DNA of 63,237 nucleotides, filler included, from Octopus bimaculoides (taxonomy: Eukaryota): NCBI RefSeq assembly GCF_001194135.2. It is 5 parts of 4 records of this genome, joined end to end, with 100 filler letters (N's around TTAATTAATTAA, not from the genome) between each part and the next. Parts side by side here need not be neighbours in the genome. Positions count along the whole stretch, not along the records: positions 1 to 20,124 come from NC_069010.1; 4 more parts are not named here. One strand, 5' to 3'. The notes beneath the pieces were generated by a model. That model was given only the letters and a program-made list of their open reading frames with translations. It made no database searches and had not been told where the DNA came from. This document shows, piece by piece, positions 1-16,475 of the stretch (its first letter is position 1; the number at the start of each line of letters is the position of its first letter). The position numbers were made by a program, and so were the translations under genes.

Positions 1-292
1 ATTCGTGTGTTCGTTTCCTGGATAGGGTTGAACGTTGTGTCCTTAAACAAGGCACTTCATTTCATTTTGTTCCAGTGTATTCCACTGAAAATGGTTTCCA
101 GCCTAGTGATGGTCATCCATTTCTCCCTTCGATCGTCACATCCTTGTTGTCTCATTGAGTCATGCATAAGAAGAACGATAAGGTGTCAGTGTCTACAGAG
201 GCACCTAAAACAATTAGCAAAATCATACTACAAGCTACCTAGTCCAACTGGCTTACGAGTGACGGCTATCAGTATATTTTAATGGACAGGAA
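1..292 (+). mobile_element. tRNA-derived SINE, family C (5' end outside window)
   Basis: B-box-like GTTCGTTTCC followed by GTGTCCTTAAACAAGGCACT. Colinear with the copy at 5507-5742 (shared GATAAGAAGA...GGCACCTACAACAATTAGC block). Confidence 0.7.
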
Positions 293-1581: not shown

Positions 1582-1658
1582 AGCTCTTGATATGCTCTCC
1601 ACAGAGATTTTATATTCTTTGAAGTTTTTAAAAGTCAAATGGAAAAAATTGGTCCAGT
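1582..1658 (-). CDS. Exon E (77 bp, phase 1 to 0) of the LRR-LRRCT-LU protein; encodes (D)WTNFFHLTFKNFKEYKISVESISRA
   Basis: Acceptor TTTATCATTTCATAG, donor GCT|GTGAGT. Joins in frame to the phase-1 end of exon D. Confidence 0.8.
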
Positions 1659-1920
1659 CTATGAAATGATAAAGAAGATAATCATTGCCTCTATAAATGA
1701 GGCACACATCAAAGATTCGCACAAACCCACATACGTAGATAAATATACACTCAACATAATCACATATACACTCAAAAATACATACAAAAAGAACCATATC
1801 GCTCTCACTATCTCTCTGTATACATACATACATACATACAGACAGACAGACATAATACATACATACATATACATACATATATATGTGCGGAGTGTGTATA
1901 ATTAATGAGGGAAACTGAAA

Positions 1921-2494
1921 TTGGAGTTCTTCGAAAGTATTTTTATCGGCAGATAACTTGGAAACGTGCCTGCCGAATGTTCTTAAGTAGTTGTTCAATG
2001 ACTGCTGGAAGATGGTTGGAGCCTATGTCGATATACGAGGCTTCCTCATTTGGTTTGTGATGGGGTTTAAATTTGGTTGTAATAAGGTTCATGTTAATAT
2101 CTAGGAAGTTGACTTCTTTAAGGTTGGTACTAACTGTGGTCCTTAAATAAAATTGGCGTAATATTTTGCATAAGGTTTTCCTTATCCTATCCATATTGTG
2201 TCCGTTTTTATTGTCTACCACTTCCAGGCCATTGTCCCTATATAAACCTATGTTGATTTCTTTTCCAAGGATATTTAGGATATAGAGGCCTAAAATGTCA
2301 GCCATCTCTACACCATTATAGCTCCCTATTGCCATTTCAAATAGATCGTCCTTATTCTTTTTTACCCGGTAGGAATTATCATGAAAATGTAATGACACCC
2401 TTGCGTTCATAATTATATCTACATCAGTGTTTATTATGGTAATATATGCCTTACTATATTCAAGTGCCTTTTGACGAAAGCTGTAGGAGATCAA
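1921..2494 (-). mobile_element. Penelope-like element RT fragment (degenerate)
   Basis: LFEMAIGSYNGVEMADILGLYIL...GLYRDNGL...VNFLDINMNL...KPHHKPNEE...SNHLPAVI corresponds to the PLE RT motifs GSYDGAE / LYRDDGL / FLD / SNHPP. Confidence 0.85.
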
Positions 2495-2527
2495 AGGATA
2501 AAACTCTACGAGTGGTAAAACTCATTT

Positions 2528-3010
2528 GACATCGGCTTCAGCCACCCACCAGTAGTCATTAAACAACATTAGCAGGCGCGTCTCCAATTTATCCTCCGAT
2601 AAAGATACTTTTGAAAAACTCATTGCTAAAATCAGAAAATAGAGAACACACTAAAATACTAAATATCATACAATCAACAGACAACATCCTAAATATTGGG
2701 GACGAAACCTTTTCTCCCTGCATACACAAGCAACATCTCAGACTTGGACACTTCAAAGAGGAACCACCACCCGCGCCGCTAAGACAACAAGGATAGTTTC
2801 TTTTCCTGAACATGAAAATTGAATAAATACAACGCAAGAACCCCACAGCTAGAAGAAACATGTCCATATGACGAACTACCTCAGGACACAAACATACTTA
2901 CATCACATTTACCTAGAATGCAATATAATGTAAACAAATTTAACCTCCTACAAAAGTCAAATCTAAGGGAGATAACCACTCAAAATGTGTCATCCAAGAG
3001 TAGCGCCCCT
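2528..3010 (+). mobile_element. Penelope-like fragment, inverted relative to 1921-2494
   Basis: 2528-2620 aligns by eye to the reverse complement of 1921-2030 and encodes NNISRRVSNLSSDKDTFEK. The extent beyond about 2620 is uncertain. Confidence 0.6.
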
Positions 3011-3621
3011 TGATTTATTATTTATTATTTTCCTTACGAGATTTTCTGCGAATTCACGGGAGTTTGTGTTTTCATCCGAATTGGAGATGAGCACCATTCC
3101 TCCATGTGATCAACGTGAAAAATTGTTAAAGTAATAAGATGTTGTCCNNNNNNNNNNNNNNNNNNNNNNNNNNNNNNNNNNNNNNNNNNNNNNNNNNNNN
3201 NNNNNNNNNNNNNNNNNNNNNNNNNNNNNNNNNNNNNNNNNNNNNNNNNNNNNNNNNNNNNNNNNNNNNNNNNNNNNNNNNNNNNNNNNNNNNNNNNNNN
3301 NNNNNNNNNNNNNNNNNNNNNNNNNNNNNNNNNNNNNNNNNNNNNNNNNNNNNNNNNNNNNNNNNNNNNNNNNNNNNNNNNNNNNNNNNNNTATATATAT
3401 ATATGCGTGTGTGTGTGTGTGTGTATGTATATGTACATACATGCACACATCTGTATGTATGTATGCACGGCCGCTTGTGTATACACATATATACACACAT
3501 GCACACATATATACATACAACAAAATATGTTCCCATACATTAACTATCATATTATCTTTTTATTAACTATTAATCTGTAATAAATCAGGTTTAGTTATAT
3601 TAGGCAATAAATAAGACTTAC

Positions 3622-3805
3622 CAAGGAAATCATTCTTGTTACATAAGGCTCCGTTGCAACAACCAACACAAGAAGTGCCTTTGGTCCATTTGTTGCATGT
3701 AAGGGTATTGTTTCTCATAGCTTCAACACATTTTTTGTATGTGCTGCAAGACTTTTCAGTCTTCAGTTTAACACCGTTTGTTGATAATGCCAATCGGCAT
3801 ACTGG
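3622..3805 (-). CDS. Exon D (184 bp, phase 0 to 1): C-terminal part of the Ly6/uPAR three-finger domain, PVCRLALSTNGVKLKTEKSCSTYKKCVEAMRNNTLTCNKWTKGTSCVGCCNGALCNKNDFL
   Basis: Acceptor TCTATTATTACAG, donor TG|GTAAGT. Contains the CC-x4-CN motif typical of LU domains. Confidence 0.9.
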
Positions 3806-5506
3806 CTGTAATAATAGATATGAAAATCATACACTACAACCACAACATTTACTACTACGACTACTGCTAACTACAGCAACAACTTTGGAAATATTTATCA
3901 TGCAAGAAGGTTTAATCATTGCTTAAAAAATAGCCTAAAGCAACAAATGAAACCGAACAACATAAGTAATTCTCTATAAAGTTTATGGCTATTTACGACT
4001 TATAATAGATAATGTTTTGAATGCTTACAGTATTCAAAGTTCTCTGATCACATATAGATATGGCAATCGTATCACGGTTCAAATCAAAACCACTTCACCC
4101 TGTCACTCACCATCAAACTTGAAATAGGTCAAATAATCCCAACAAATATGTATCATTCCGCCAAACTTTCCTCTGCATCGGGGAATGCAGACGAGGACTT
4201 TTTTTTTTTTTGATGCAAAATTTACGAAACATCATACGCGCAAAACTCACCAGCAACAGCAAATCATTCACCTATACCCAAAGATGATAATTAGATAAAT
4301 TTATCAGATTGAATACCTCAGGCTTTGCAAATAAAACAGAAAATGCATAAATAGACACAAGAGAAATATGCTTTTATTTTTTAAGTATAATTTATAGTCA
4401 CGAAATGAAAATAGGATAACTTAGTATAAAATGTAGAGAGATAATAGCCAAGATTTAAATGTATCATCGGACCTCAATAGACTTAATAAGATACATTCTG
4501 AAAACGAAAAATATCAGAAATTGAAAGGAACATTTAAAGGGGAAAATGCACCACAAGACAATTAATGATTTCATACACCTAACAACGATAAAAGCAAAGA
4601 AAATGTAGTTCACGAAATTAGAAATATGTGTTGCCTTAATTTGAACCTGAAACTCGTTTCTTTGAAACGAGGAGAATTTTCAGAAATAAAAATCCATATC
4701 CATGAAACTGAGTTACGACGCCATGAACAAATAACCAATAGAAACTACACATAATATCGGTAGACTGGCGTCTTCAAAAAAGCCAATGGAGTCGGCGATT
4801 GCAAACGAAGGAAGCTTTAAATAAGCTAACTCAGCTTCAAGAAAACAGAAAGGTCTGAGAGCAGGACAGACAATAAAATAGAGAACAGAATGCAGCCATG
4901 CACTTATATCAAGCTCTGTTCTCCTATATTCCCGCAAATCAGTTAATGTGAAGCATTGATCTGTGCCATTACCGGTGTCCTTTATTGCTTCTCTCGTGTT
5001 TCTTCGTTCATCAATGTACTGGAGTACAACTACGTGCTCAGAGATACGCCTGGCAATTTCAACTCGTGTTTTAGCTGCGTTTTAAACGTATTGCTTGTGT
5101 CTTTTCCACTTGAAATAATACCACCCACCCATCATGTTCTGAAGAGTTTGTTGTACTACTTGATGAGAGCGAAGATTTAATACACTTTCAATTTTTCATA
5201 AGTAGAGATATATAATATTTCTCTGTTCTTGTACTTTTCAACTTCGTCTATCAAACAGCCTCTTTTGCTATAGCGACCAGACAAAGGATAATTGTCATTT
5301 TCTGCTTTAACTAATTCATTGATCCACTCTTAGTAATCTTTGCGAACTGAAGGGGTCACGTCCGACTTCCAACTACCCCCTCTAAGTCTAGCGACCCCAG
5401 ATCGTTCCATAGGAACCTTGATCTCAAGTTGCCTCCTGGCCACGTACATTCACACACCCCACTCTAAGTACAGCTATGTTTAACGGAGAAAGGTCCCTCA
5501 TAAGTA

Positions 5507-5742
5507 CTTGTGTTCGATTCTTGGACAGGGTTCAATGTTGTTTCCTTGCACTTTGTTTTAGTCTACTCAAATGAAAAGGGCTCCCAGACTAGTGTTTGTC
5601 ATCTTTTTCTCCCTTCAATCGTCAGATCTTTGTTGTCCCATTGCGTCATGGATAAGAAGATCAATAGGGTGTCCATGTCTACACAGGCACCTACAACAAT
5701 TAGCGAGTGACAGTCATGGATATATTTTAACGGAAAGGAAGA
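5507..5742 (+). mobile_element. tRNA-derived SINE, family C
   Basis: GTGTTCGATTC B-box. Colinear with 1-292. Confidence 0.7.
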
Positions 5743-5761
5743 AAGTAAGATCCTAGTTTAC

Positions 5762-5853
5762 CTTTGCTCTTGGACAACTGGTCACATCTGAATCATTGCA
5801 AATCATCCTTGAACATGTTTGACACTGCAAATTCCTTTGAAATAACGAGTAAT
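5762..5853 (-). CDS. Exon C (92 bp, phase 1 to 0): N-terminal part of the LU domain, (N)YSLFQRNLQCQTCSRMICNDSDVTSCPRAK
   Basis: Acceptor TTGTATTCTGTAG, donor AAG|GTAAAC. LxCxxC start of an LU domain; in frame with exons B and D. Confidence 0.9.
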
Positions 5854-6138
5854 CTACAGAATACAAGTAAATATCTGTATTTATGAACCAAATAGTGCGA
5901 TGCATAGCTATAACAAGAAATATTTTCTTTCTGATGTAAAGCAAATGTATACGCATTAGTGTTGGAATCAATACATGTTAGACATATAAACCAAATTATT
6001 AACAAAGACTATAAACCTATTTTTATATTCATTTAGAAATGTTTCAATTGTCACAAATTCAACTGAGAAAAGCATGAAAGCTATCTGTTGCCCTTCTCTT
6101 TTAGTATTCTGATCTCACACAAAAATGTGAAACTTGTG

Positions 6139-6202
6139 GAACAAGTCAAATAAAGGGATGAACAAGTCAAATAAAGGGATGAACAAGTCAAATAAAGGGA
6201 TG

Positions 6203-6204
<2 letters not shown>
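6139..6204. repeat. 21-bp tandem repeat GAACAAGTCAAATAAAGGGAT x3.1 abutting (TA)n
   Basis: Three identical units at 6139, 6160 and 6181. Confidence 0.95.
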
Positions 6205-6238
<34 letters not shown>

Positions 6239-6387
6239 TTATATGCATACATGCGTACATACATACACACACACACATATATATATATATATATGCATGT
6301 ATATACATACACATACACACACAAACACACACACACATATATATATACACATACATGTATATACATGCCCATATATATACGCACATA

Positions 6388-7170
6388 TGCGGGGTCATCG
6401 AAAAAGGTTTCCGTGATTTCAAAATGAAATAACTAAGTCCGTATTAAAGATATACTATTTATGCACTGATCCCGGATTTTTTCTGCGTAGACAATGTTCT
6501 TAAGATAATCCCAAAAGAACTCCGTAGGAGTTAGATCAAGGTTTCTAGGTGGCCACAAAATAGGACCATCCCTTCCAATCCAGCGGCCAGGAATCTGTTG
6601 TTGAGAACTTGTTGCACATTATGGTTGTAGTGAGCCGGTGCTCCGTCCTGCTGGAAAATTACACTTATTCCCTTTTCTCTTTCAATGTCTGCAATTTGAG
6701 GAACAGATAAATTTCTAGCATGTCCAAGTAACTAGCGCCTGTAATCGTGTTTTCTACGAATATGAAAGGGCCAAGATCACGATCATGCAGAGATCTACAC
6801 CATACATGAAACTTGGGCGAATTACAGACGTACTGGAAAACTTCATTGGGTTGTTGAGCTCTCCACATCTGACTTTTATATCGGTTAACACAACCATTTA
6901 TGTGGAATGTTGCTTCATCACAAAATAAAATTCTGTTAAGATAACTATTATCGTCATCAATTTCTCTCACTATCGTTACATCAAATTTAGCGCTTTTAGG
7001 CCTATCTGTCTCCTTAATCTTATGTCTCATTTGAATTCTGTAAGCATGCAGTCTTAGGCGTTTGTGCAGCACATTTTGAATTATTGCTTTAGACATACGA
7101 AGTTACAAACTGCATCGATGGACTTCTTAGGACTATGCAAACATGATCTGCATACTGGACGATAGGATCA
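6388..7170 (-). mobile_element. Tc1/mariner-superfamily transposase remnant, DD41D (rosa/VS)-like
   Basis: ILFCDEATFHINGCVNR...HVWC...GPFIF...YLDML, then IFQQDGAPAHY...F(frameshift)PGRWIGRDGPILWPPRNLDLTPTEFFWDYL. There are 41 residues between the second D and the position of the third acidic residue, with one inferred frameshift. Confidence 0.8.
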
Positions 7171-7705
7171 ATGACATCTTAGAGCATCATAGAGCATTGT
7201 GTCATCTGAGTCAGCAACGAGTCGATACTCACGCGATATTTCCACTTCACCGACCACTCTGCCTCACGCCTCTCGGTTTTCGATTTAAACCTTCAACACC
7301 GGATTTCCTATCTCTCGTTTCTTTAGGGAAGACGAGTACATCTTTCTGAAAACTTATGCGCTTTTTGATTTAAGTTCCCACCATCACATTCTTTCATCTA
7401 CATTTTAACTCCCCACCATCTGCTGTGCCAATGTATGCTTTAATTGTCTACTTCGTTTTCTTTTTCCTTTTCCCGCTGCACCACATCCACCAACCCACAG
7501 CCATACATTATTTGTCCCTGCTCCCATATTTACACTTTACACACACTTCACATGCTAGCTCACAGTTTCTACATACATACCTCACTTCAGCACCACAATT
7601 ACTCTCGTCACACTTTATTACACCCTCTACATCTTTCCCAGTGTATGTTCTATCTTTGACACATACATACAGACACATACACACTGGTACATAGATTCAT
7701 ATACA

Positions 7706-8260
7706 TTCAGCGTGACCAGCTGAGACTATGGGTATTACTAGCCATCTTGACCTTGGTCTACCCCTACATATCCTGCCAATTGTAGTGGTAGAGGCTTCAG
7801 GTACCTCCAGCATATGTCCTATCAGAACCTACTGTCAATACACTTTCCGACTGGGCTCCCAAGTGTGATCAAAGGAAACTGTTATCTAGTCATGTGTTCT
7901 TGTTCAACCCCTAGATTTCCTGTCGGTTTGCATGGGTTGAATGGTATTGCGATTTTCTCGTGTGACATTCTAATCGCATACCCGTATAACCCAAAAGGTA
8001 GTGCCTCAATGTAGAAAACGAACGACTCGATCTGGAGAGACTCCGTCATCTCCAGGGTACGCACTGGGTCGAGTAAAATTACTCCAGGGATTCTTCGGAG
8101 AAGTCCCATTTCAGCCGCTTCTATTTGCGATCAAACCCTTTCGATCGTTAGTCAACATTCATTACGGTAGGTGAGGATCGGCACGAAAACCAAACTGAGG
8201 ATACCGTTTTTGACCCTTTTTTTTACTAAGCTGTTCTCTTCTGAGGATCGAATACTGGAA
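7706..8260 (-). mobile_element. RTE-clade LINE 3' fragment
   Basis: VFVPILTYRNEC...IEAAEMGLLRRIPGVILLDPVR...GLYGYAIRM matches the RTE C-terminal consensus (PILTYG.E.W / QAAEMRFLRRI / WYGHV.RM). Confidence 0.75.
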
Positions 8261-8296
8261 CATTTGTCTATCTCAGAAAAGTGATTATGCCAATAA

Positions 8297-8722
8297 TAAA
8301 CCCACGCACTGGTTCTATTTCCTTTTATTATCCATCCCTTTGTTAACAATTTGTTAACACATTATCAAAACGAATTCTCGATGAAACGTTCGGCCAATCA
8401 ATCAGTTATGATTGTAAGAAATCCTTTGTTGTCATTCACGACCTCTTCAATGACCGTTTTAATGTTTTCGTTCTATACTTACATAGTTGTGAGTGAGAAT
8501 GTNNNNNNNNNNGAAATAAACCCACGCACTGGTTCTATTTCCTTTTATTATCCATCCCTTTGTTAACAATTTGTTAACACATTATCAAAACGAATTCTCG
8601 ATGAAACGTTCGGCCAATCAATCAGTTATGATTGTAAGAAATCCTTTGTTGTCATTCACGACCTCTTCAATGACCGTTTTAATGTTTTCGTTCTATACTT
8701 ACATAGTTGTGAGTGAGAATGT
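8297..8722. repeat. ~206-bp direct duplication across a 10-N gap (probable assembly overlap)
   Basis: 8297-8502 and 8517-8722 appear identical; the ORF track gives identical peptides at 8351 and 8571. Confidence 0.85.
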
Positions 8723-9088
8723 ACATGAAAGAGGAAGGGAGTTAGAAAGAGAGAGTGTCTGTCTGTGTGTATGTGTGTGTGTATGTGCACGCACATTCAT
8801 GCATATGTGCGCTGTCGTGTGTCTGTTTGTGTGTGTATGTGTTTGTGTGTGTGTGCCTGCGTGTGTTTGTGTGCCGATGACGGTTTGTGTGATACAGTTT
8901 AATCTGTAAGTGCATTAGAGAGAAAATGTGAATGTGAAGCGTGTAGATGGTAAAACGTTTATTTCTTTATACCTTTATCTATTGTTTCAGTTTCACAAGA
9001 CATTATATGGAGAACTTCAGAGAATAACCCGGATTTTTGTTAGTTTTAATAGTAAAAGAAAAACAGAAGCAAGGAAGATTTTACTAAC

Positions 9089-9246
9089 TTTGACATTGCG
9101 AATAATCCAGTATAAATATTTCTCTGCTTGGAGTTTCCCGACACGTGCCTTGGACAATCACATTTCTGGTATAGACTTTTTTAATATGTTTTACGAAGGC
9201 TGGTAGGTGACAGCCACACTTCATATTCTTATTGTTTGTGAGGTCA
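9089..9246 (-). CDS. Exon B (158 bp, phase 2 to 1): last LRR strand plus LRRCT, (L)DLTNNKNMKCGCHLPAFVKHIKKVYTRNVIVQGTCRETPSREIFILDYSQCQ
   Basis: Acceptor TTTATAATTACAG, donor AA|GTTAGT. LDLxxN followed by CxC...C...C is the LRRCT pattern; phases match exons A and C. Confidence 0.9.
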
Positions 9247-9839
9247 CTGTAATTATAAAGAGAACTCTAACTGAATGCGCTTCAGATCACCAGAGAAACT
9301 CCTGTTTGATTTGACAAGAAGCACAGATTAGAAAATTCGAACAGGTGTATAAAAGTTATGACATTCATGGTTTTTTGCCCCCAAATTGTTAATAACATCA
9401 ATAATTTGAAATGGTTTCTAGTGGAAAGTGAACATATATCACGCTTCTATTATTTTTTAGCTTACATATTGAATAATAAAGTACCTTTAAGTAAGAAGAT
9501 TTTTATCCACTTAAAACGATTCCATTTTATTGTGTTTTAGGGACATTTTAGTGACGGATATTTGGTGGTAGCCACTTTGTGCCGCTGTCTCTGAGAAAAA
9601 CTCATTTAGATGGGAGGTTTTGGTGCTAAGAAGGTTGTATTTATTCAGTGCGGCAAATATTTTTTAAGTCAGAGATTGACCAGTGCAGAAACTGAAAAAT
9701 TACAGTGTTGTACTTCTTTAAGTTTCTGCGGTACAGACATGTATAGTAATGTTCTTAATTAACAAGGGGGAATTTATATACATTTTTCGAAATATCAATT
9801 TAAATCTTTTCAGTTTTTTAAGAAACAACAACAACAACA

Positions 9840-10525
9840 ATGGTTTCAAATTTTGGGACAAGGCCAGCAATTTAGGGTAGGGGTAAATCAACAACATCGA
9901 CCCCAGTGTCCAACTGGTACTTATTTTAACGATTCCGAAAGGATGAAAGGTAAAGTCAAACTCGGCAAAATGTGAACTCGGAACGTAAAAACGGACGAAA
10001 TGCCGCTCAGTATTTTATCCGGCGTGATAACGAGTCTGCCAGATCGTTACCTTAACAACTATAATAATAATGGTTTCAAATTTTAGTACAAGGCCAAGTA
10101 TTTTGGGGGTGGGTGCTAGTCGATTACATCGACCCCAGAGTTCAACTGGTACTTAATTTATCGACTCCGAAAGATGAAACGCAAAGTCGACCTCGGCGGA
10201 ATTTGGACTCAGAATGTAGCGACCGGCGAAATACCGCTGAGCATTTCGTCCAGCGTGCTAGCGAATCCGTCAGCACGCCGCCACAACAACAGCAACAATA
10301 ACAATAATAATCCTTCTACTATAGGTACAAAGCTCGAAATTTTGGAGGAAGGAGCTAGTCGATTACATCGACCCCAGTACGCAACTGGTATTTAATTTAT
10401 CGACCCTTAAAGGATGAAAGGCAAAGTCGACCTCGACGGAATTTGAATTCAGAACGTAACGGCAGACGAAATACAGCTAATCATTTCGCCCGGCGTGCTA
10501 ACGATTCCGCCACCTAGCCGCCTTA
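9840..10525 (-). mobile_element. Three head-to-tail copies of tRNA-SINE family A
   Basis: Copies at about 9840-10055, 10070-10282 and 10310-10525, each carrying the GGTCGACTTTGCCTTTCATCCTTTCGG...AAGTACCAG core and separated by (AAC/AAT)n. Confidence 0.9.
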
Positions 10526-10559
10526 AGAAGAAGAAGAAGAAGAATGTTTAACCAAATTA

Positions 10560-13500
10560 GAGGAAACAGATAATGATAACAATAAGTATAAGGTGCAATA
10601 TGTCTCATTTCAAACAGAGAGAAAAAGTAGATATGCTCGCGAATAAAACTTCAAAAACAAATTTTTATCCATGAGTTCGAGGCACTCAAGATACGAAAAC
10701 GGAAATAGCACACACCCAGAGACGGTGATCTGCCAAAAAGTTAAATCTGAACAGGCAGACCCTTTCCTAATGTCACTGCCTAAGTGAAAAACAAATTCAA
10801 AAGAGAAAGGTGGACATGTGACGACTACATCTAAGTGCTTTATGCATTTTACACTGCATAACTATAGCCGGGGAATAGAGAGATAACAAGAGAAACATTT
10901 TAAATATGGAGAAGAAGCAATTTTGATAGAAGGTCTCGGAGAATACTCTTGCGAATGTCCGGCGATATATCCTGAAAGAGGGAAAAGTGTCCCAAACCTA
11001 AATATATAAACTAATAGATAAAGTACGCACGGAAAATAAAATAAAACCTCTCAAAATACAAAACAATGGACTGCAATCAGGCAAAGTCATCGCATTAGAC
11101 ATTATCTCTCCGGAAACGCAGAAGACACCACAAAAGAAAGAAGGGAACACAACAGAAATAACAATACAAACAGTAAATAAAAGGCTAAACCAAAGTAAAC
11201 TCCCTACACTGTTACCCAACCCCAAAATAAATAGAAGAGTACAGCAAATAAATAACACACATAAATAGGCAAATACTGAAGCACAAAGCAACAACAAACA
11301 AAATATCATACACCACAATAGACCAACTATAACCGAGGACTGAGACGAACCGACTGAAGATATAACAAAGGTAGAAGAACTCAATATCATACAGTCAGTA
11401 AATATGGACCAGCGTAAACGTCTCCCCTGGCTACAGAAGAATAAACAGCTCTATGAAAGGATAAATAGATACAACAGAGCCTCACAAGTAATAATGAGCA
11501 TATCGATATTTATACACTAGATATCAACAAACTAAATAACTTGATCTTCTCAACGACTGCAGTAATAACCAAGGAAACTGGACTTTACTCTGACAAGGAG
11601 AATAAAAAAATTCAGCCAAATCTCAAACCTCAAAATGGAAACAGATTTTAATAAATAAAAAGAGACTTATCACTACTTTGTGAATTAGAGAAAATGAGAT
11701 CAAATATGAAGAAATAAAAAAAAGGCCCATATAACAAAACAATACAATATAGACAATAAATAAAATACCTGAAAGGTAAAAGAAAAAATTAAACAGGGCA
11801 TAGCAGCAAAGACTTGCCGCATAAAACGGTATGAAAAACGGGAAGGCTTCTTCCAACAAAATAGAGAATTCAGAATAAACACAAAAAGTTTTTACAGAGA
11901 GTTAAACAAAGAAGATTATATCAATAGACATCATGCCAGCAACATCAGTGATTCAGTTATACTGGGAAGCAATATGGAACAAACCAAAACAATACAACAG
12001 AAATACTTAGCGGATTAATAGGGAAACGGAAAGGAAGAACACAATAGAACTACAGATATGTCCCACAATCACAGGCCAAGAGATCACAGACAGCTGAGGA
12101 GTACCAGCAAGTGGAAAACTTCAGGAATATAGAAGGTTCTCAACTTTTAGTTGAAACACCTCATCAGTACTCATAAGCACGCAGCGACAGCATTCAATTT
12201 ATTGATAAGAGAGCCAGAATCAACATCGAACGGAAATGCTGGAAAAATAGAGATACCGCCCTACCACAAAATCACAGACCAATAGCATGCCTATCGACAT
12301 CAAACTAATTCCTAGCATCAGTATTCCATAACCGGCTTATAAAGCATCTGGAAAATTACAATGTTTTACCAGAAGTACAAAAAGGGTATCGGATAGGGAT
12401 GTATGGTTGTAAGGAGCAACTTCTGGTAAACCGAGCCATTACAGAGAATTGTAAGAGGAGAAAGACAAACATGAGCATGACTTGAATTGATTACTAGAAA
12501 GCATTCGACAGCCTTCCACACTCATGTATACAGGAATTTCTCCACACAAATAAGATAGCCTCACCACTACTAAAATATTTTAAACACGCAATGGCAAATT
12601 GGAAAATCAGTATAACATTAAAACTTACCCGACCCCGGAAGAAGAGGGATTTTTCAGGGAGACTCACTGTCAGACCCCTGCTGTTCTGCCTTTCTCCGCC
12701 CCCGCTAACAGACTTGTTAAGCGAAACCACTATGCTATAGACAAAAAAATAAAACATCTCCTGTACATGGGTGACCTAGAACTTTTCACTAAAAGTACTA
12801 TGGAACAGAGAAACCTTATCAAAATTGTCCATAATTTAAGTAAGGACATCGAAATGAGCATGGGGCTGGACAAATGTGCCAGATTCACTCCGAGAGAGGC
12901 AAATTAATCAGTACTGAAAACTCTGCACTCAACATAGACACAGAAATTAAAGAATTAGACCACGATCGCTTATACAAATATCTGGGAATATACGAAACAG
13001 CGAAAATCCAACACAGAGAAATGAAAGAAACTTAGGAGAGAGTATTATAGAAGAGTATAGAAGAGTTAGACTAATATTAAACACTGAACTTAATGCTAAA
13101 AATAAATAAGATAATAGGGATAAACACGCTAGTCATACCAGTCATAAATTATAGCTTTAACATAATAAACTGGAAGATCAGTAAATTGAGAAACCTAGAT
13201 AGAAAATCCAGAAGACTAATAACAGCGCACCGAAGTCACTACACCAAAGCAGACGCAAGCAGAATATATTTATCCCGCTTAGGAGGAGATTGTGACCTGA
13301 TACAGAAAGCACTAAGAACAAACTACATAAAATACAGAGTAGGCAATACATCAGAAAGTAATAAGTGCAGAATCTGTGAACAAAATGGTGAAACCGTATG
13401 ACATATTACCAGCCAATGTATGCCACTAGCTCAGAAGGAATATAAGAGACGCCACGACAATATAGCAAGGCTTGTCCATTGGACACTTTGCAACAAAGTA

Positions 13501-14013
13501 TGGACTTGACAGAGCAAAAAATTGGTACAACCACAAGCCCGAAAGCATCATCGAAAATGATAACGCAAAGACCCTGTGGAATTTTATGATTCAGTGCGAC
13601 CATGAGATAGAGAATAGGAAGCTGGACATAGTCTTAGTTGAGAAAGAAAACAAACTCTGCTGGGTCATAGATATAACATGCCCAGTTGACAACAAGGTAT
13701 GCGATAAGGAACAAAGAAAAGTCGAGAGATATGACAGGTTAGCTTGCGAGGTAAAGCAGTCATAGTCGATGAAGAAGGTGGTAGTAGTACCAATTATTGT
13801 CGGAGCCTTGGGAACAGTGAGTAAAAATCACGAGAAGTTCATGGAACAAATAGGGGCTGCAATAAGGGTGGAGCACGTGCAGAAAACAGCACTGCTTGGA
13901 AGCGCTCGAATACTCCAGAAGGTGCTCGAAAAACAAGAGGTGTTACCTTAGTTCACTGGTAGTGAACAACTGGCAACGTGGTACATCTCCAACGTTAGAA
14001 GCTGTGCAAAGGC
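10560..14013 (+). mobile_element. Near-full-length degenerate R4/Dong-clade LINE (RT plus restriction-like endonuclease)
   Basis: KIKQGIAAKTCRIKRYEK; NHRPIACLST; IDY*KAFDSLPH; RGIFQGDSLS; HLLYMGDLELF; CRIC...HI..C (CCHC); RKLDIVLVEK...VIDITCP; VPIIVGALG. Ends in a 3' UTR followed by (AAT)n. Many stops and frameshifts; the 5' boundary is approximate. Confidence 0.92.

Positions 14014-14094
<81 letters not shown>
14014..14094. repeat. (AAT)n microsatellite at the R4/Dong 3' junction
   Basis: Direct sequence. Confidence 0.95.
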
Positions 14095-14824
14095 CTTTTC
14101 TTGAGTTTGTAAGTCATGTAATAGAAGATAACTATTTCATTTTCATTTCAATACATTTTAATATTTCTGTATGCCTTTGAGTCTGTCTCATTCGGTGTGT
14201 TCTAACCGCTACCAAATAATCCATTGATAAGGAGGCAATCAGGTAATCACTAAAGCCAAAAAAAAAAAAAAAACTCAATTCGATTGTCCTATTCAGTTAT
14301 ATGTGATCGAAGTATTGTCTGAGTAGAAATTAAAGGAAAGATGACTAAGAGAAGACTGAACCTCGAGCAGACAGGTATGAATGTAGGCCATTCCCACCAC
14401 TCTGTATTACATACTGCAGTAGATTTATTCGAAAGGAGAAATGATAAAGTGATAATTAAAATAACAGCAACCAAAACGATATTTGCAGATAAAACATGAG
14501 GTAAGTTTACATGTTCTTCTTTCGGTCTTGAATTGTTCTTCACACATAAGCACAAAGAAAAATATGTTAATATTACAATCTTAAAACATATTAAAGAGTT
14601 GATCAAAAATAAGAATACAAGTTATTATTTTTAGGAGATGTTAATTGTTCTATGTTCCATGTATCAGAATTGGTAAAGTAAAATTAAGTAGGATGTAGTT
14701 AGAGAAACTTTAGATGACATTCTAGATATAATATGGAATCATAAGACAAAAATGGTGGAAAGTAAAATGTATTGGGCAAACAGATTACACACAGCTGACA
14801 GAAGAGAAAGAGATGAGATGCAAT

Positions 14825-14955
14825 ATATAGATGACGTACAATATATAGATGACATACTAGATATAGAAGATATACTAGATACAGATGATATACTGGACAG
14901 GTGACCTACTAGATTTCGATGATATACTTGACAGAGATGACATACAAGATATGGA
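14825..14955. repeat. Degenerate 18-bp minisatellite (consensus ~ATAGATGATATACTAGAT), about 7 units
   Basis: ATAGATGACGTACAATAT / ATAGATGACATACTAGAT / ATAGAAGATATACTAGAT / ACAGATGATATACTGGAC and further units. Confidence 0.8.
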
Positions 14956-15173
14956 TAAGTCTACTATTTGTTACTAATTTGCAATATATAAATTACCAGA
15001 TACTAGATACAGGTGACATTCTCGTTAAAGCACAATATTCGGAAATCGTGCTGATCCACTGAAATTTAGACCAACTCTTCGCTATATTTTATCACCTACA
15101 CTTAGCAAAGAACTGATAATTTGGTGACCTCATTTTACGATTTGAGTTTTCCAACAAAGAGACTTGTCCTTAC

Positions 15174-15245
15174 AGTTTCTTTATACTGGGCAGGAACAGG
15201 AAAGCGCCATCTTCATATTCTTGTATTTGGTTGTTCTGCAACTCT
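15174..15245 (-). CDS. Exon A (72 bp, phase 2 to 2): single leucine-rich repeat ELQNNQIQEYEDGAFLFLPSIKK(L)
   Basis: Acceptor TTTGTCTCTTTATTTTCAG, donor CT|GTAAGG. A 72-bp phase-2/2 exon is the classic one-LRR-per-exon unit, and the peptide fits LxxNxIxxxxxxAFxxLxxIxxL. Confidence 0.9.
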
Positions 15246-16215: not shown

Positions 16216-16227
16216 AATATGAAAACG

Positions 16228-16269
16228 ATGAGGAGGAAGACGATGATGGTGATGATGATGATGATGATA

Positions 16270-16301
<32 letters not shown>

Positions 16302-16323
16302 AATGATGATGATGATGATGATG
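16228..16323. repeat. (GAT)n microsatellite
   Basis: Direct sequence. Confidence 0.95.
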
Positions 16324-16475
16324 AAAAACAGAAAAAGTAACATAAGAAAAAAGAAAAACGAAAGAATGAAACAGAATAGGACGGCCTGAAAACGAAGCTG
16401 CTGAGAAGATAAAACCGTAGAATAATTCGTTTCTCTCGTCTAACAGTATCTCTGACTGTTGCGCATATGTGCATA

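Follow-up and report, generated by a model that had tools for sequence, protein, structure and literature searches.

Five octopus exons encoding a capped leucine-rich repeat and a three-finger domain, probably part of a lineage-expanded adhesion GPCR

Analysis of a 63,237-nucleotide stretch of Octopus bimaculoides DNA, hereafter the window, confirmed five exons on the minus strand, which encode part of the outer, putative ligand-binding region of one receptor from an adhesion-GPCR family expanded in octopus. The exons probably represent an internal extracellular stretch of such a receptor; at this locus, assembly gaps appear to divide its gene among at least two annotated models, LOC106880013 and P0188. 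All the peptide pieces were located where a preliminary description of the window had placed them; the exons, the two gaps of the segment and the locus are the following.

Exon 1, 15245-15174, minus strand: 72 nt, phase 2/2, one leucine-rich repeat (LRR) unit (ELQNNQIQEYEDGAFLFLPSIKKL).
Exon 2, 9246-9089, minus strand: 158 nt, phase 2/1, last LRR and LRRCT cap (NNKNMKCGCHLPAFV...GTC...YSQC).
N gap, 8503-8512: 10 N in intron 2, within an assembly artefact region (8295..8722).
Exon 3, 5853-5762, minus strand: 92 nt, phase 1/0, first half of the LU (three-finger, Ly6/uPAR) domain, Cys1-4 (NLQCQTCSRMICNDSDVTSC).
Exon 4, 3805-3622, minus strand: 184 nt, phase 0/1, second half of the LU domain, Cys5-12, with the end CCNGALCNKND.
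N gap, 3148-3391: 244 N in intron 4, with TA/CA-rich simple repeats at the borders; no exon is expected here.
Exon 5, 1658-1582, minus strand: 77 nt, phase 1/0, opening of a SEA-like domain of about 100 aa (DWTNFFHLTFKNFKEYKISVESISRA).
Locus, CM046630.1, about 0.75-0.85 Mb, minus strand, O. bimaculoides.

Each of the five exons is bordered by an AG acceptor and a GT donor, the phases of neighbouring exons are compatible and the introns between them measure 5927, 3235, 1956 and 1963 nt; the spliced coding sequence of 582 nt gives 194 open codons and the same peptide proposed earlier, so that the exons, phases and intron lengths of the preliminary description are borne out. This peptide matches with 100% identity, over 100% of its length, a 238-aa NCBI model named 'uncharacterized protein LOC106880013 [Octopus bimaculoides]' (P0001), in which exon 1 corresponds to residues 33-56, also with 100% identity; the gene had been called hidden, wrongly, because it is already annotated. 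Exon-by-exon tblastn against independent paralogues returned E values from 1e-5 to 1e-37, with matches to exon 2 in at least 12 paralogues; these matches, together with the full identity to the NCBI protein, are far beyond chance. Compared with the five-exon segment, P0001 extends further at both ends, with one more LRR exon upstream and a dubious terminal exon of 12 aa downstream, both outside the window.

Both gaps fall in introns and touch no exon; therefore, continuity of the reading frame across them is immaterial. The 10-N gap is bordered by an exact 208-bp duplicate (8295-8502 = 8515-8722), which looks like an unmerged contig overlap, and the length of intron 2 is therefore probably overstated, the true one being shorter by about 220 nt. 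The exons on either side of the gaps are ordered as in the O. vulgaris locus L009, which is gap-free and whose introns matching 2 and 4 contain no additional exon; in the L009 model the second LU exon (LU-b) and the SEA-1 exon are adjacent.

An extracellular LRR region with an LRRCT cap, as first proposed for this segment, is supported by several lines of evidence. Pfam LRR_8 matches the annotated model P0001 with 56.2 bits (cut-off 27), the segment peptide alone giving weak LRR_8/LRR_4 matches; in a PDB profile alignment the 'CxC...C...C' cap aligned to the LRRCT of VLR and LGR4, and all four of its cysteines are retained. Residues 1-110 of the AlphaFold model have pLDDT values of 77-96, about 90 in the exon 2 part, and the Foldseek matches of the LRR part are capped extracellular LRR proteins, e.g. 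NGL-1/3, Nogo receptor, Slit2, LGI1 and LINGO-1.

The cysteine-rich domain encoded by exons 3 and 4 carries an N-terminal LxCxxC (NLQCQTC), a C-terminal CCxxxxCN (CCNGALCN) and 12 Cys, 11 of which are invariant among 22 family members, while the remaining one is at least 90% conserved. A profile built from the 22 family LU domains and searched against the PDB gave eight matches in all, each of them (8/8) a three-finger protein: the best is LYPD1 (6zss, E 0.004), with 12/12 Cys aligned, and the others, all sub-threshold, are candoxin, two ACVR1 ectodomain chains, two LYPD6 chains, Lynx1 and SLURP1. The AlphaFold model of the LU domain alone is of moderate confidence (pLDDT 70.6, pTM 0.61); its best 50 Foldseek matches in the PDB are all (50/50) three-finger folds, the first being Lynx2 (probability 1.00, TM 0.58/0.61), with CD59 and LYPD6B among the top matches and a best E value of 0.011. 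Moreover, Table S3 of Ritschard et al. 2019 (PMC6408891) reports an InterProScan match of SUPERFAMILY SSF57302 to residues 136-215 of A0A0L8GYR2 (E 5.7e-6), a stretch falling inside the LU domain (residues 128-220) of the same paralogue, here P0170. Profile search and Foldseek being two independent tests, joined by SSF57302 on a paralogue, the predicted LU/three-finger fold of the preliminary description is supported.

That the domain is LU-like by cysteine spacing only, and belongs to some other disulphide-rich fold, appears highly improbable. Pfam UPAR_LY6 gave no match at E up to 10 with either the segment peptide or P0001, the best E values in sequence and fold and the pLDDT are modest, and the model places a 17-residue helix in the third finger; however, three-finger proteins account for every sequence match and for all the best fold matches, the whole set of Cys aligns with LYPD1, SSF57302 was obtained independently, and CD59 and LYPD6B, which have a helix in the third finger, rank among the top folds. 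The earlier count of 12 Cys was correct, although not as a novelty, since human LYPD1/Lynx2 matches it Cys for Cys.

Exons 3 and 4 form a two-exon LU cassette with phase-1 introns on both sides; likewise, in PLAUR and the Ly6 genes LU is encoded by two exons with phase-1 introns on either side. Because of these symmetrical flanks, the cassette can be skipped, duplicated or shuffled with the frame intact. All of these states occur within the family: P0070 is without exactly the LU domain and in P0003 it is duplicated, while P0187 is without the SEA-like domain.

Octopus proteins with LRR and LU followed by HRM, GAIN and 7TM, which the preliminary description had put forward as unverified, do exist. 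Full-length relatives have the order SP-LRRNT-LRR-LRRCT-LU-(SEA-like)-HormR-GAIN/GPS-7TM, one of them with an additional C-terminal Death domain; LRR, LU, GPS and 7tm_2 occur in a single protein in P0163 (XP_052821851.1, 1535 aa), P0165 ('adhesion GPCR A3', 1204 aa), P0045, P0174 and P0178, and the complete 7tm_2 domain of the relatives scores 84-143 bits. P0090 (1155 aa) is encoded by one uninterrupted ORF on an intronless 4201-nt Logan contig, which is transcript-like. None of Pfam UPAR_LY6, SEA and HRM reaches its threshold: SEA has a full-length but sub-threshold match (16.8 bits vs 26.4) on the P0090 homologue, that member only, and HRM matches in the family have E values from 7e-4 to 0.05. 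At least nine distinct LU-bearing family proteins are found in O. bimaculoides, at least five of them at separate mapped loci; most family members are named 'ADGRG6-like' by NCBI.

The sequence of the locus also agrees with the proposal that the protein continues past LU, making it an internal domain of a larger receptor. Exon 5 opens the SEA-like domain and, beyond 23.6 kb with 49% N, SEA-like exon 3 and the HormR, GAIN, GPS and TM1-3 exons follow collinearly on the same strand. These downstream exons are annotated separately as P0188, a 5'-truncated 'ADGRG6 isoform X1' model that starts 16.3 kb downstream, same strand; SEA-like exon 3, bounded by AG and GT splice sites, is open upstream of the annotated Met of P0188. 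The GPS of P0188 scores 49.5 bits (cut-off 22.5) with the motif CCCDHL|TSFALLM (HL|T present), and a precomputed Pfam match assigns this model to GAIN_ADGRA3 (PF26588); a GAIN domain with a GPS motif is encoded at this locus, its cleavage being predicted from sequence. As for the 7TM region, exons matching P0174 residues 682-754 (about TM1-3) lie at 38798-41138 of L008, the rest being beyond the locus or in gaps. SEA-like exon 2, a small one of about 17 aa, was looked for at this locus and not found. In O. vulgaris L009 all these exons are present, in the same order, in one gene, and at the paralogous loci L003, L004 and L005, too, LU and GPS/7tm_2 fall in separate models.

LOC106880013 might instead be what its annotation implies, a stand-alone soluble LRR-LU protein of 238 aa ending in ERISTSLLGISP, acting as a secreted decoy or modulator and not as a receptor domain. 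Indeed, P0001 terminates with a short alternative exon, and several short family models stop after the LU or the SEA-like domain; however, P0001 starts mid-LRR without a signal peptide and includes just the first exon of the SEA-like domain, no paralogue has an equivalent of its terminal exon, which adjoins an N gap, and P0188 is demonstrably 5'-truncated. We consider a soluble protein very improbable.

The other possibility is that the five exons are a truncated tandem duplicate (LRR-LRRCT-LU-SEA'), i.e. a gene fragment or young pseudogene, upstream of a separate adhesion-GPCR gene; this appears unlikely, although it accounts for several features of the locus. An extra open copy of LU-b (L001 36245-36397), which would be the separate gene's own LU exon, lies between the two gene models, at a distance of 3.5 kb downstream from exon 5, and is cut off by a gap; it has a canonical acceptor and the preceding intron sequence is 82% identical. 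Because of this copy, the five exons could be part of an incomplete duplicate. Pieces of SEA-like and HormR exons in inverted orientation are found close by, fragmentary models are numerous in the family, and exon 5 is two codons shorter than its O. vulgaris relative, the deletion falling in the first SEA-like strand. Compared with the closest O. vulgaris locus, the five-exon coding sequence has a dN/dS of about 0.84, which may indicate diversifying selection or decay, and a dS of 0.17 vs 0.31 for the downstream exons; together, these values fit relaxed constraint or a different history of the two halves. Conversely, the five exons are open, the 12 LU and four LRRCT Cys are retained and eight splice sites are canonical; no stop codon was observed, against about 2 expected by rough estimate under neutrality among about 60 non-synonymous changes. 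Furthermore, a second LRR, LRRCT or LU-a exon was not found in the readable downstream sequence, and each exon is single-copy at the O. vulgaris locus.

An octopus-specific 'group 3' expansion of adhesion GPCRs, with GPS and adhesion 7TM and with LRR in 5/22 sequences, was described by Ritschard et al. 2019 (PMC6408891); its genes are co-localised in the genome, carry signals of positive selection and are expressed, with enrichment in axial nerve cord, suckers and skin. The LU-bearing receptors match this family: by UniProt accession, the Table S3 entries A0A0L8FLR8 (Death domain) and A0A0L8GYR2 are P0164 and P0170, respectively, and the locus of the five exons, whose models are fragmentary, would belong to it through these paralogues. 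LU and SEA-like domains are not described in that paper, where SSF57302 appears as a single row of Table S3, with no comment. Thus, the novelty initially claimed was overstated as regards the receptor expansion, because this was described in 2019; what is left is the LU module: a three-finger domain in the adhesion-GPCR class is essentially unremarked, and the accessible part of a 2026 adhesion-GPCR review (PMC13197933) makes no mention of Ly6/uPAR/three-finger domains, octopus or cephalopods.

Among known receptors, ADGRA2/ADGRA3 (GPR124/GPR125) share with the octopus proteins the N-terminal LRRs and LRRCT cap, followed by HormR, GAIN and 7TM. Pfam GAIN_ADGRA3 matches paralogues as well as P0188, one member carries the ADGRA3 name given above, and the tail of several octopus members, e.g. 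...AETNF, looks like a class-I PDZ ligand, similar to ETTV, the C-terminal tail of ADGRA. However, the order of the ADGRA subfamily is LRR, LRRCT, Ig, HormR, GAIN, 7TM, and in octopus LU and SEA-like domains replace Ig, so that the ectodomains are alike at both ends and unlike in the middle. The GAIN and 7TM part of P0174 is closest, among solved structures, to ADGRG2 (E 1e-66) and ADGRG6 (E 1e-60), no ADGRA 7TM structure being in its PDB match list. The membrane-proximal half of the ADGRG6 (GPR126) ectodomain has the order SEA, HormR, GAIN, 7TM, the same found in octopus (with the SEA-like domain); conversely, the entire order in ADGRG6 is CUB, PTX, SEA, HormR, GAIN, 7TM, while the octopus N-terminus is LRR, LRRCT, LU, and neither Pfam CUB nor pentraxin is among the reported matches of the full-length members scanned.

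The LU domain shares the three-finger fold, LxCxxC and CCxxxxCN with LYPD1/Lynx2, Lynx1, SLURP1, LYPD6, CD59 and PSCA, and its 12-Cys framework is that of LYPD1. These single-domain Ly6/uPAR proteins are small and GPI-anchored or secreted, whereas the octopus LU, about 20% identical to them, lies inside a receptor longer than 1000 aa and has no GPI signal. To our knowledge, TGF-beta/activin/BMP receptors are alone among well-known signalling receptors in binding their ligands through a three-finger ectodomain; their ectodomains are among both the sequence and the fold matches of the octopus LU, but they are single-pass Ser/Thr kinases, with LU as sole ectodomain module, and are unrelated to GPCRs and LRRs.

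As an adhesion GPCR, the full receptor would comprise signal peptide, LRRNT, LRRs, LRRCT, LU, SEA-like domain, HormR, GAIN with GPS and a family-B2 7TM, some receptors of the family having an extra C-terminal Death domain. From what is known of these domain families, the capped LRR arc and the LU module may form a two-part protein-binding head, with SEA-like and HormR domains as spacers, and GAIN would cleave itself at CDHL|TSFALLM; a head under force or bound by ligand would then expose the tethered agonist to the 7TM, leading to G-protein signalling. By analogy, the LU module might even serve as a tethered Lynx-like ligand, perhaps binding nicotinic-type pentameric channels in cis or in trans, a proposal to which we give very little chance. 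It comes from the LU having its closest sequence and predicted-fold matches in Lynx2/LYPD1, which modulates nicotinic receptors, and from the enrichment of the family in nerve cord, suckers and skin; candidate targets could include the nAChR-derived chemotactile receptors of octopus suckers. If true, touch-taste or cholinergic channels would be coupled to adhesion-GPCR signalling, and diversification of a recognition surface would underlie both the phase-1 cassette of LU and the high dN/dS.

Regarding annotation, several O. bimaculoides models named 'uncharacterized', 'slit-like' and 'ADGRG6-like' each seem to be one half of a gene that was divided at an assembly gap. The LU module, flanked by symmetrical phase-1 introns, is for this reason a clean case of exon-cassette shuffling. 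Ectodomain modules are the main basis for classifying and studying adhesion GPCRs. With LU following a capped LRR arc in a GAIN-7TM receptor, this family provides a concrete, testable handle on what the octopus-specific expansion recognises.

The five minus-strand pieces that the preliminary description had assigned to one gene segment were all found in the window, and their spliced coding sequence gives 194 open codons, identical to the peptide proposed there. The exons are the following:

15245-15174, minus strand, exon 1, phase 2/2, LRR
9246-9089, minus strand, exon 2, phase 2/1, LRR and LRRCT
5853-5762, minus strand, exon 3, phase 1/0, first half of the LU (Ly6/uPAR three-finger) domain
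3805-3622, minus strand, exon 4, phase 0/1, second half of the LU domain
1658-1582, minus strand, exon 5, phase 1/0, first exon of a SEA-like domain

They are separated by introns of 5927, 3235, 1956 and 1963 nt, and splice sites are canonical at all eight positions. Window positions 1-20124 correspond, in reverse orientation, to 34324-14201 of locus L001 (record CM046630.1, GCA_001194135.2). The gene had been described as hidden; however, the peptide matches the NCBI "uncharacterized protein LOC106880013" (P0001, 238 aa) with 100% identity from end to end, and all the other protein matches are from Octopus, mostly short or partial models. Upstream of the window, P0001 has an extra LRR exon (L001 10491-10571); downstream of the window it has a 12-aa terminal exon, ERISTSLLGISP (L001 40168-40206), which has a counterpart in none of the paralogues, stops some 10 nt short of an N run and is probably an annotation artefact. 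No further LRR, HormR, GAIN or 7TM exons were found inside the window. The segment was thus read correctly, but the gene is annotated and belongs to a known family.

Both assembly gaps within the five-exon segment are intronic:

8503-8512, N gap in intron 2, 10 N
3148-3391, N gap in intron 4

The gap of intron 2 lies between exactly identical 208-bp blocks (8295-8502 and 8515-8722), most likely an unmerged contig overlap, and the length of this intron is thus overstated by about 220 nt. In the gap-free O. vulgaris locus the exon order across introns 2 and 4 is identical, without any extra exon. Long microsatellites, perfect or almost so, also occur in the introns, (TG)29 by a gap at 1460-1518, (AAT)27 at 14014-14094 and (GAT)32 at 16227-16324, together with an ORF (12599-12907) that weakly matches RVT_1 (Pfam, E 0.012); several other intronic ORFs that by eye resemble transposase or transposon remnants have no Pfam match, and an Rfam scan of the window gave none.

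The LRR portion is readily recognized, with 56 bits for Pfam LRR_8 on P0001 and pLDDT values of 77-96 for residues 1-110 of the AlphaFold model. Foldseek relates this part to capped neuronal LRR ectodomains (NGL-1/3, LGI1, Nogo receptor, Slit2 D3, VLR, LINGO-1), and the profile alignment to PDB sequences extends through the CxC cap. The LU domain has no match in a Pfam scan. The 22 aligned LU domains of the family share eleven invariant cysteines and one nearly invariant; when their profile was compared with all PDB sequences (E up to 10), all eight matches were three-finger proteins. The best one, LYPD1/Lynx2 (E 0.004), aligns end to end with all 12 cysteines, followed by candoxin, the ACVR1 ectodomain (two chains), LYPD6 (two chains), Lynx1 and SLURP1. 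The AlphaFold model of the LU domain alone (pLDDT 70.6, pTM 0.61) displays two beta hairpins, a third-finger helix and the last strand, and its best 50 Foldseek matches in the PDB are all three-finger folds, headed by Lynx2 (TM 0.58/0.61, probability 1.00) and then by TGF-beta type I receptor ectodomain, Prod1, PSCA, CD59, LYPD6B, uPAR and snake toxins. Moreover, SUPERFAMILY SSF57302 is listed at residues 136-215 of A0A0L8GYR2 (Ritschard et al. 2019, Table S3, PMC6408891), the UniProt accession of the paralogue P0170, whose LU domain spans residues 128-220. Profile, predicted structure and this earlier entry all support the proposed three-finger fold. The 12 cysteines, which had been considered one pair beyond the canonical set, represent a LYPD1-type framework and are not new, since all of them align with those of LYPD1.

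Relatives were collected by an exhaustive HMMER search with a family alignment profile (A2) that held LRR columns; the best 150 matches are mostly giant LRR proteins, and family members were chosen by extent of match. This search, together with Pfam scans and source names, revealed that full-length members share one domain order. Octopus predicted proteins in which LRR and LU domains continue into HRM, GAIN and 7TM, as put forward in the preliminary description, do exist among database models:

P0163, XP_052821851.1, 1535 aa: signal peptide, LRRNT, LRRs, LRRCT, LU, SEA-like, HormR, GAIN/GPS, 7tm_2, Death domain
P0165, XP_014773211.1, "adhesion G protein-coupled receptor A3", 1204 aa
P0045, XP_052827273.1, "ADGRG6"
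P0174, P0178 and P0187: O. vulgaris family members

The homologue P0090 (1155 aa, with signal peptide) is encoded by one unbroken ORF on a 4201-nt Logan contig, transcript-like evidence for expression as a single mRNA; a word-index search with its LRRCT-to-HormR stretch gave no match. At paralogous O. bimaculoides loci, the model that carries LU has a GPS/7tm_2 model after it, on the same strand, indicating that split annotation is the rule in this assembly.

Exon 5 opens a domain of about 100 aa, which every longer relative has between LU and HormR. This domain is here called SEA-like on the basis of its position and of a weak Pfam SEA match, full-length but sub-threshold (E 0.0074, 16.8 vs 26.4 bits), given only by P0090; the SEA-like family profile (A4) produced only spurious PDB matches. 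A candidate for its second exon at window 65-91 ("PFSVEYTGTK") was discarded, having no usable splice sites, an immediate stop and an E of 1.6.

The larger receptor postulated beyond the LU domain would be encoded by SEA-like exon 3 and by HormR, GAIN, GPS and TM exons located downstream on the same strand. The next same-strand model, P0188 ("ADGRG6 isoform X1", 433 aa; HormR, GAIN_ADGRA3, GPS and TM1), begins 16.3 kb past the end of LOC106880013. Its annotated Met is part of a longer open exon, SDRNQTIFAIYSKLYSKITNKQLWCNISQVLKKSHTLRNFGVQRSHMKLFDE, that has a canonical acceptor and donor (about 9861-10018 of the downstream locus L008), which encodes SEA-like exon 3; thus the P0188 model is 5'-truncated. 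The HormR, GAIN, GPS and first TM exons follow collinearly. Exon 5 and SEA-like exon 3 are 23.6 kb apart; SEA-like exon 2 (about 17 aa) was not found in the readable part of this stretch, 49% of which is N, enough to conceal it. The closest long relative, O. vulgaris P0023 (73% identity over 219 aa), occupies a similar chromosomal position, where a single gene without gaps comprises every exon, LRR through 7TM.

Some features of the locus fit a different explanation, namely that the window's exons are a partial duplicate in early decay. An extra open exon for the second half of LU (PVCRFTLSTNGVTLKTEKSCSTYRKCVQAMRDNTAACDKWPSGTSCAGCC...) is present beyond the window, 3.5 kb downstream from exon 5 (L001 36245-36397); it has a canonical acceptor and 74.5% protein identity to exon 4, runs into an N gap, and its upstream intron is 82% identical to that preceding exon 4 (window 3982-4193). 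Inverted partial copies of SEA-like exon 3 and of a HormR exon (L008 7261-7368 and 3359-3403, minus orientation) sit between the LOC106880013 and P0188 models and suggest local rearrangement or misassembly. In pairwise Nei-Gojobori comparisons with the O. vulgaris locus (L009), the window's 194 codons have dS 0.169, dN 0.142 and omega 0.84, against dS 0.307, dN 0.151 and omega 0.49 for the 413 downstream codons (L008 exons); paralogue gene conversion or separate histories of the two halves are possible causes of the dS gap. Exon 5 also carries a 2-codon deletion. These observations can be taken in favour of decay; on the other hand, stops and frameshifts are absent from the window's exons, every cysteine is retained and every splice site is intact. 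The extra exon, the inverted fragments, the omega value and the deletion also fit diversifying selection or gene conversion among tandem paralogues, and positive-selection signals have been reported for group 3 adhesion GPCRs (Ritschard et al. 2019, PMC6408891).

Two exons make up the LU module, and phase 1 at both of its ends makes it a symmetrical cassette. P0070 is without LU, P0003 has it duplicated, P0187 is without the SEA-like domain and P0177 contains SEA-HormR three times; these variants point to exon shuffling as the origin of family diversity, and suggest modular exchange or, alternatively, annotation noise. One family member (P0163/P0030) carries a C-terminal Death domain (residues ~1455-1529) after a Ser/Gln-rich repeat, a feature unusual in a GPCR and noted as well by Ritschard et al. 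2019. P0174, P0173, P0201, P0178, P0016, P0018 and P0019 share a conserved C-terminal tail (...AETNF, AETKF or AETDL) that has the form of a class-I PDZ ligand and recalls the ETTV with which ADGRA2/3 end; in some short family models it follows the SEA-like domain immediately. The solved structures nearest to the GAIN and 7TM part are those of ADGRG2 and ADGRG6, and precomputed Pfam annotation gives GAIN_ADGRA3. The ectodomain resembles ADGRA at both ends (LRR ... HormR-GAIN) and, in its membrane-proximal half, GPR126, where the order is SEA, HormR, GAIN, and falls short of the full definition of either.

The expansion corresponds to the octopus-specific "group 3" adhesion GPCRs, where LRR was reported for 5 of the 22 sequences and a Death domain for one; its members are co-localised in the genome, show enriched expression in three tissues (axial nerve cord, suckers, skin), and include a single Euprymna scolopes member with a layout like P0090 (PMC6408891). 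Ly6 is nowhere mentioned in the main text of that study, Ly6 and uPAR are absent from the 2019 classification paper, and the available part of a 2026 adhesion-GPCR class review (PMC13197933) contains no mention of Ly6, uPAR, three-finger, LU domain, octopus or cephalopod; full-text literature searches returned no paper linking Ly6/uPAR domains with adhesion GPCRs. Thus, the gene and the family were already known, and what is added is the LU domain assignment, not taken up in the literature. In these receptors the LRR arc and the LU module may form a composite binding head, with the SEA-like and HormR domains acting as spacers; the GAIN domain would undergo self-cleavage at HL|T (CDHL|TSFALLM in P0188), after which the tethered agonist would activate the 7TM domain.
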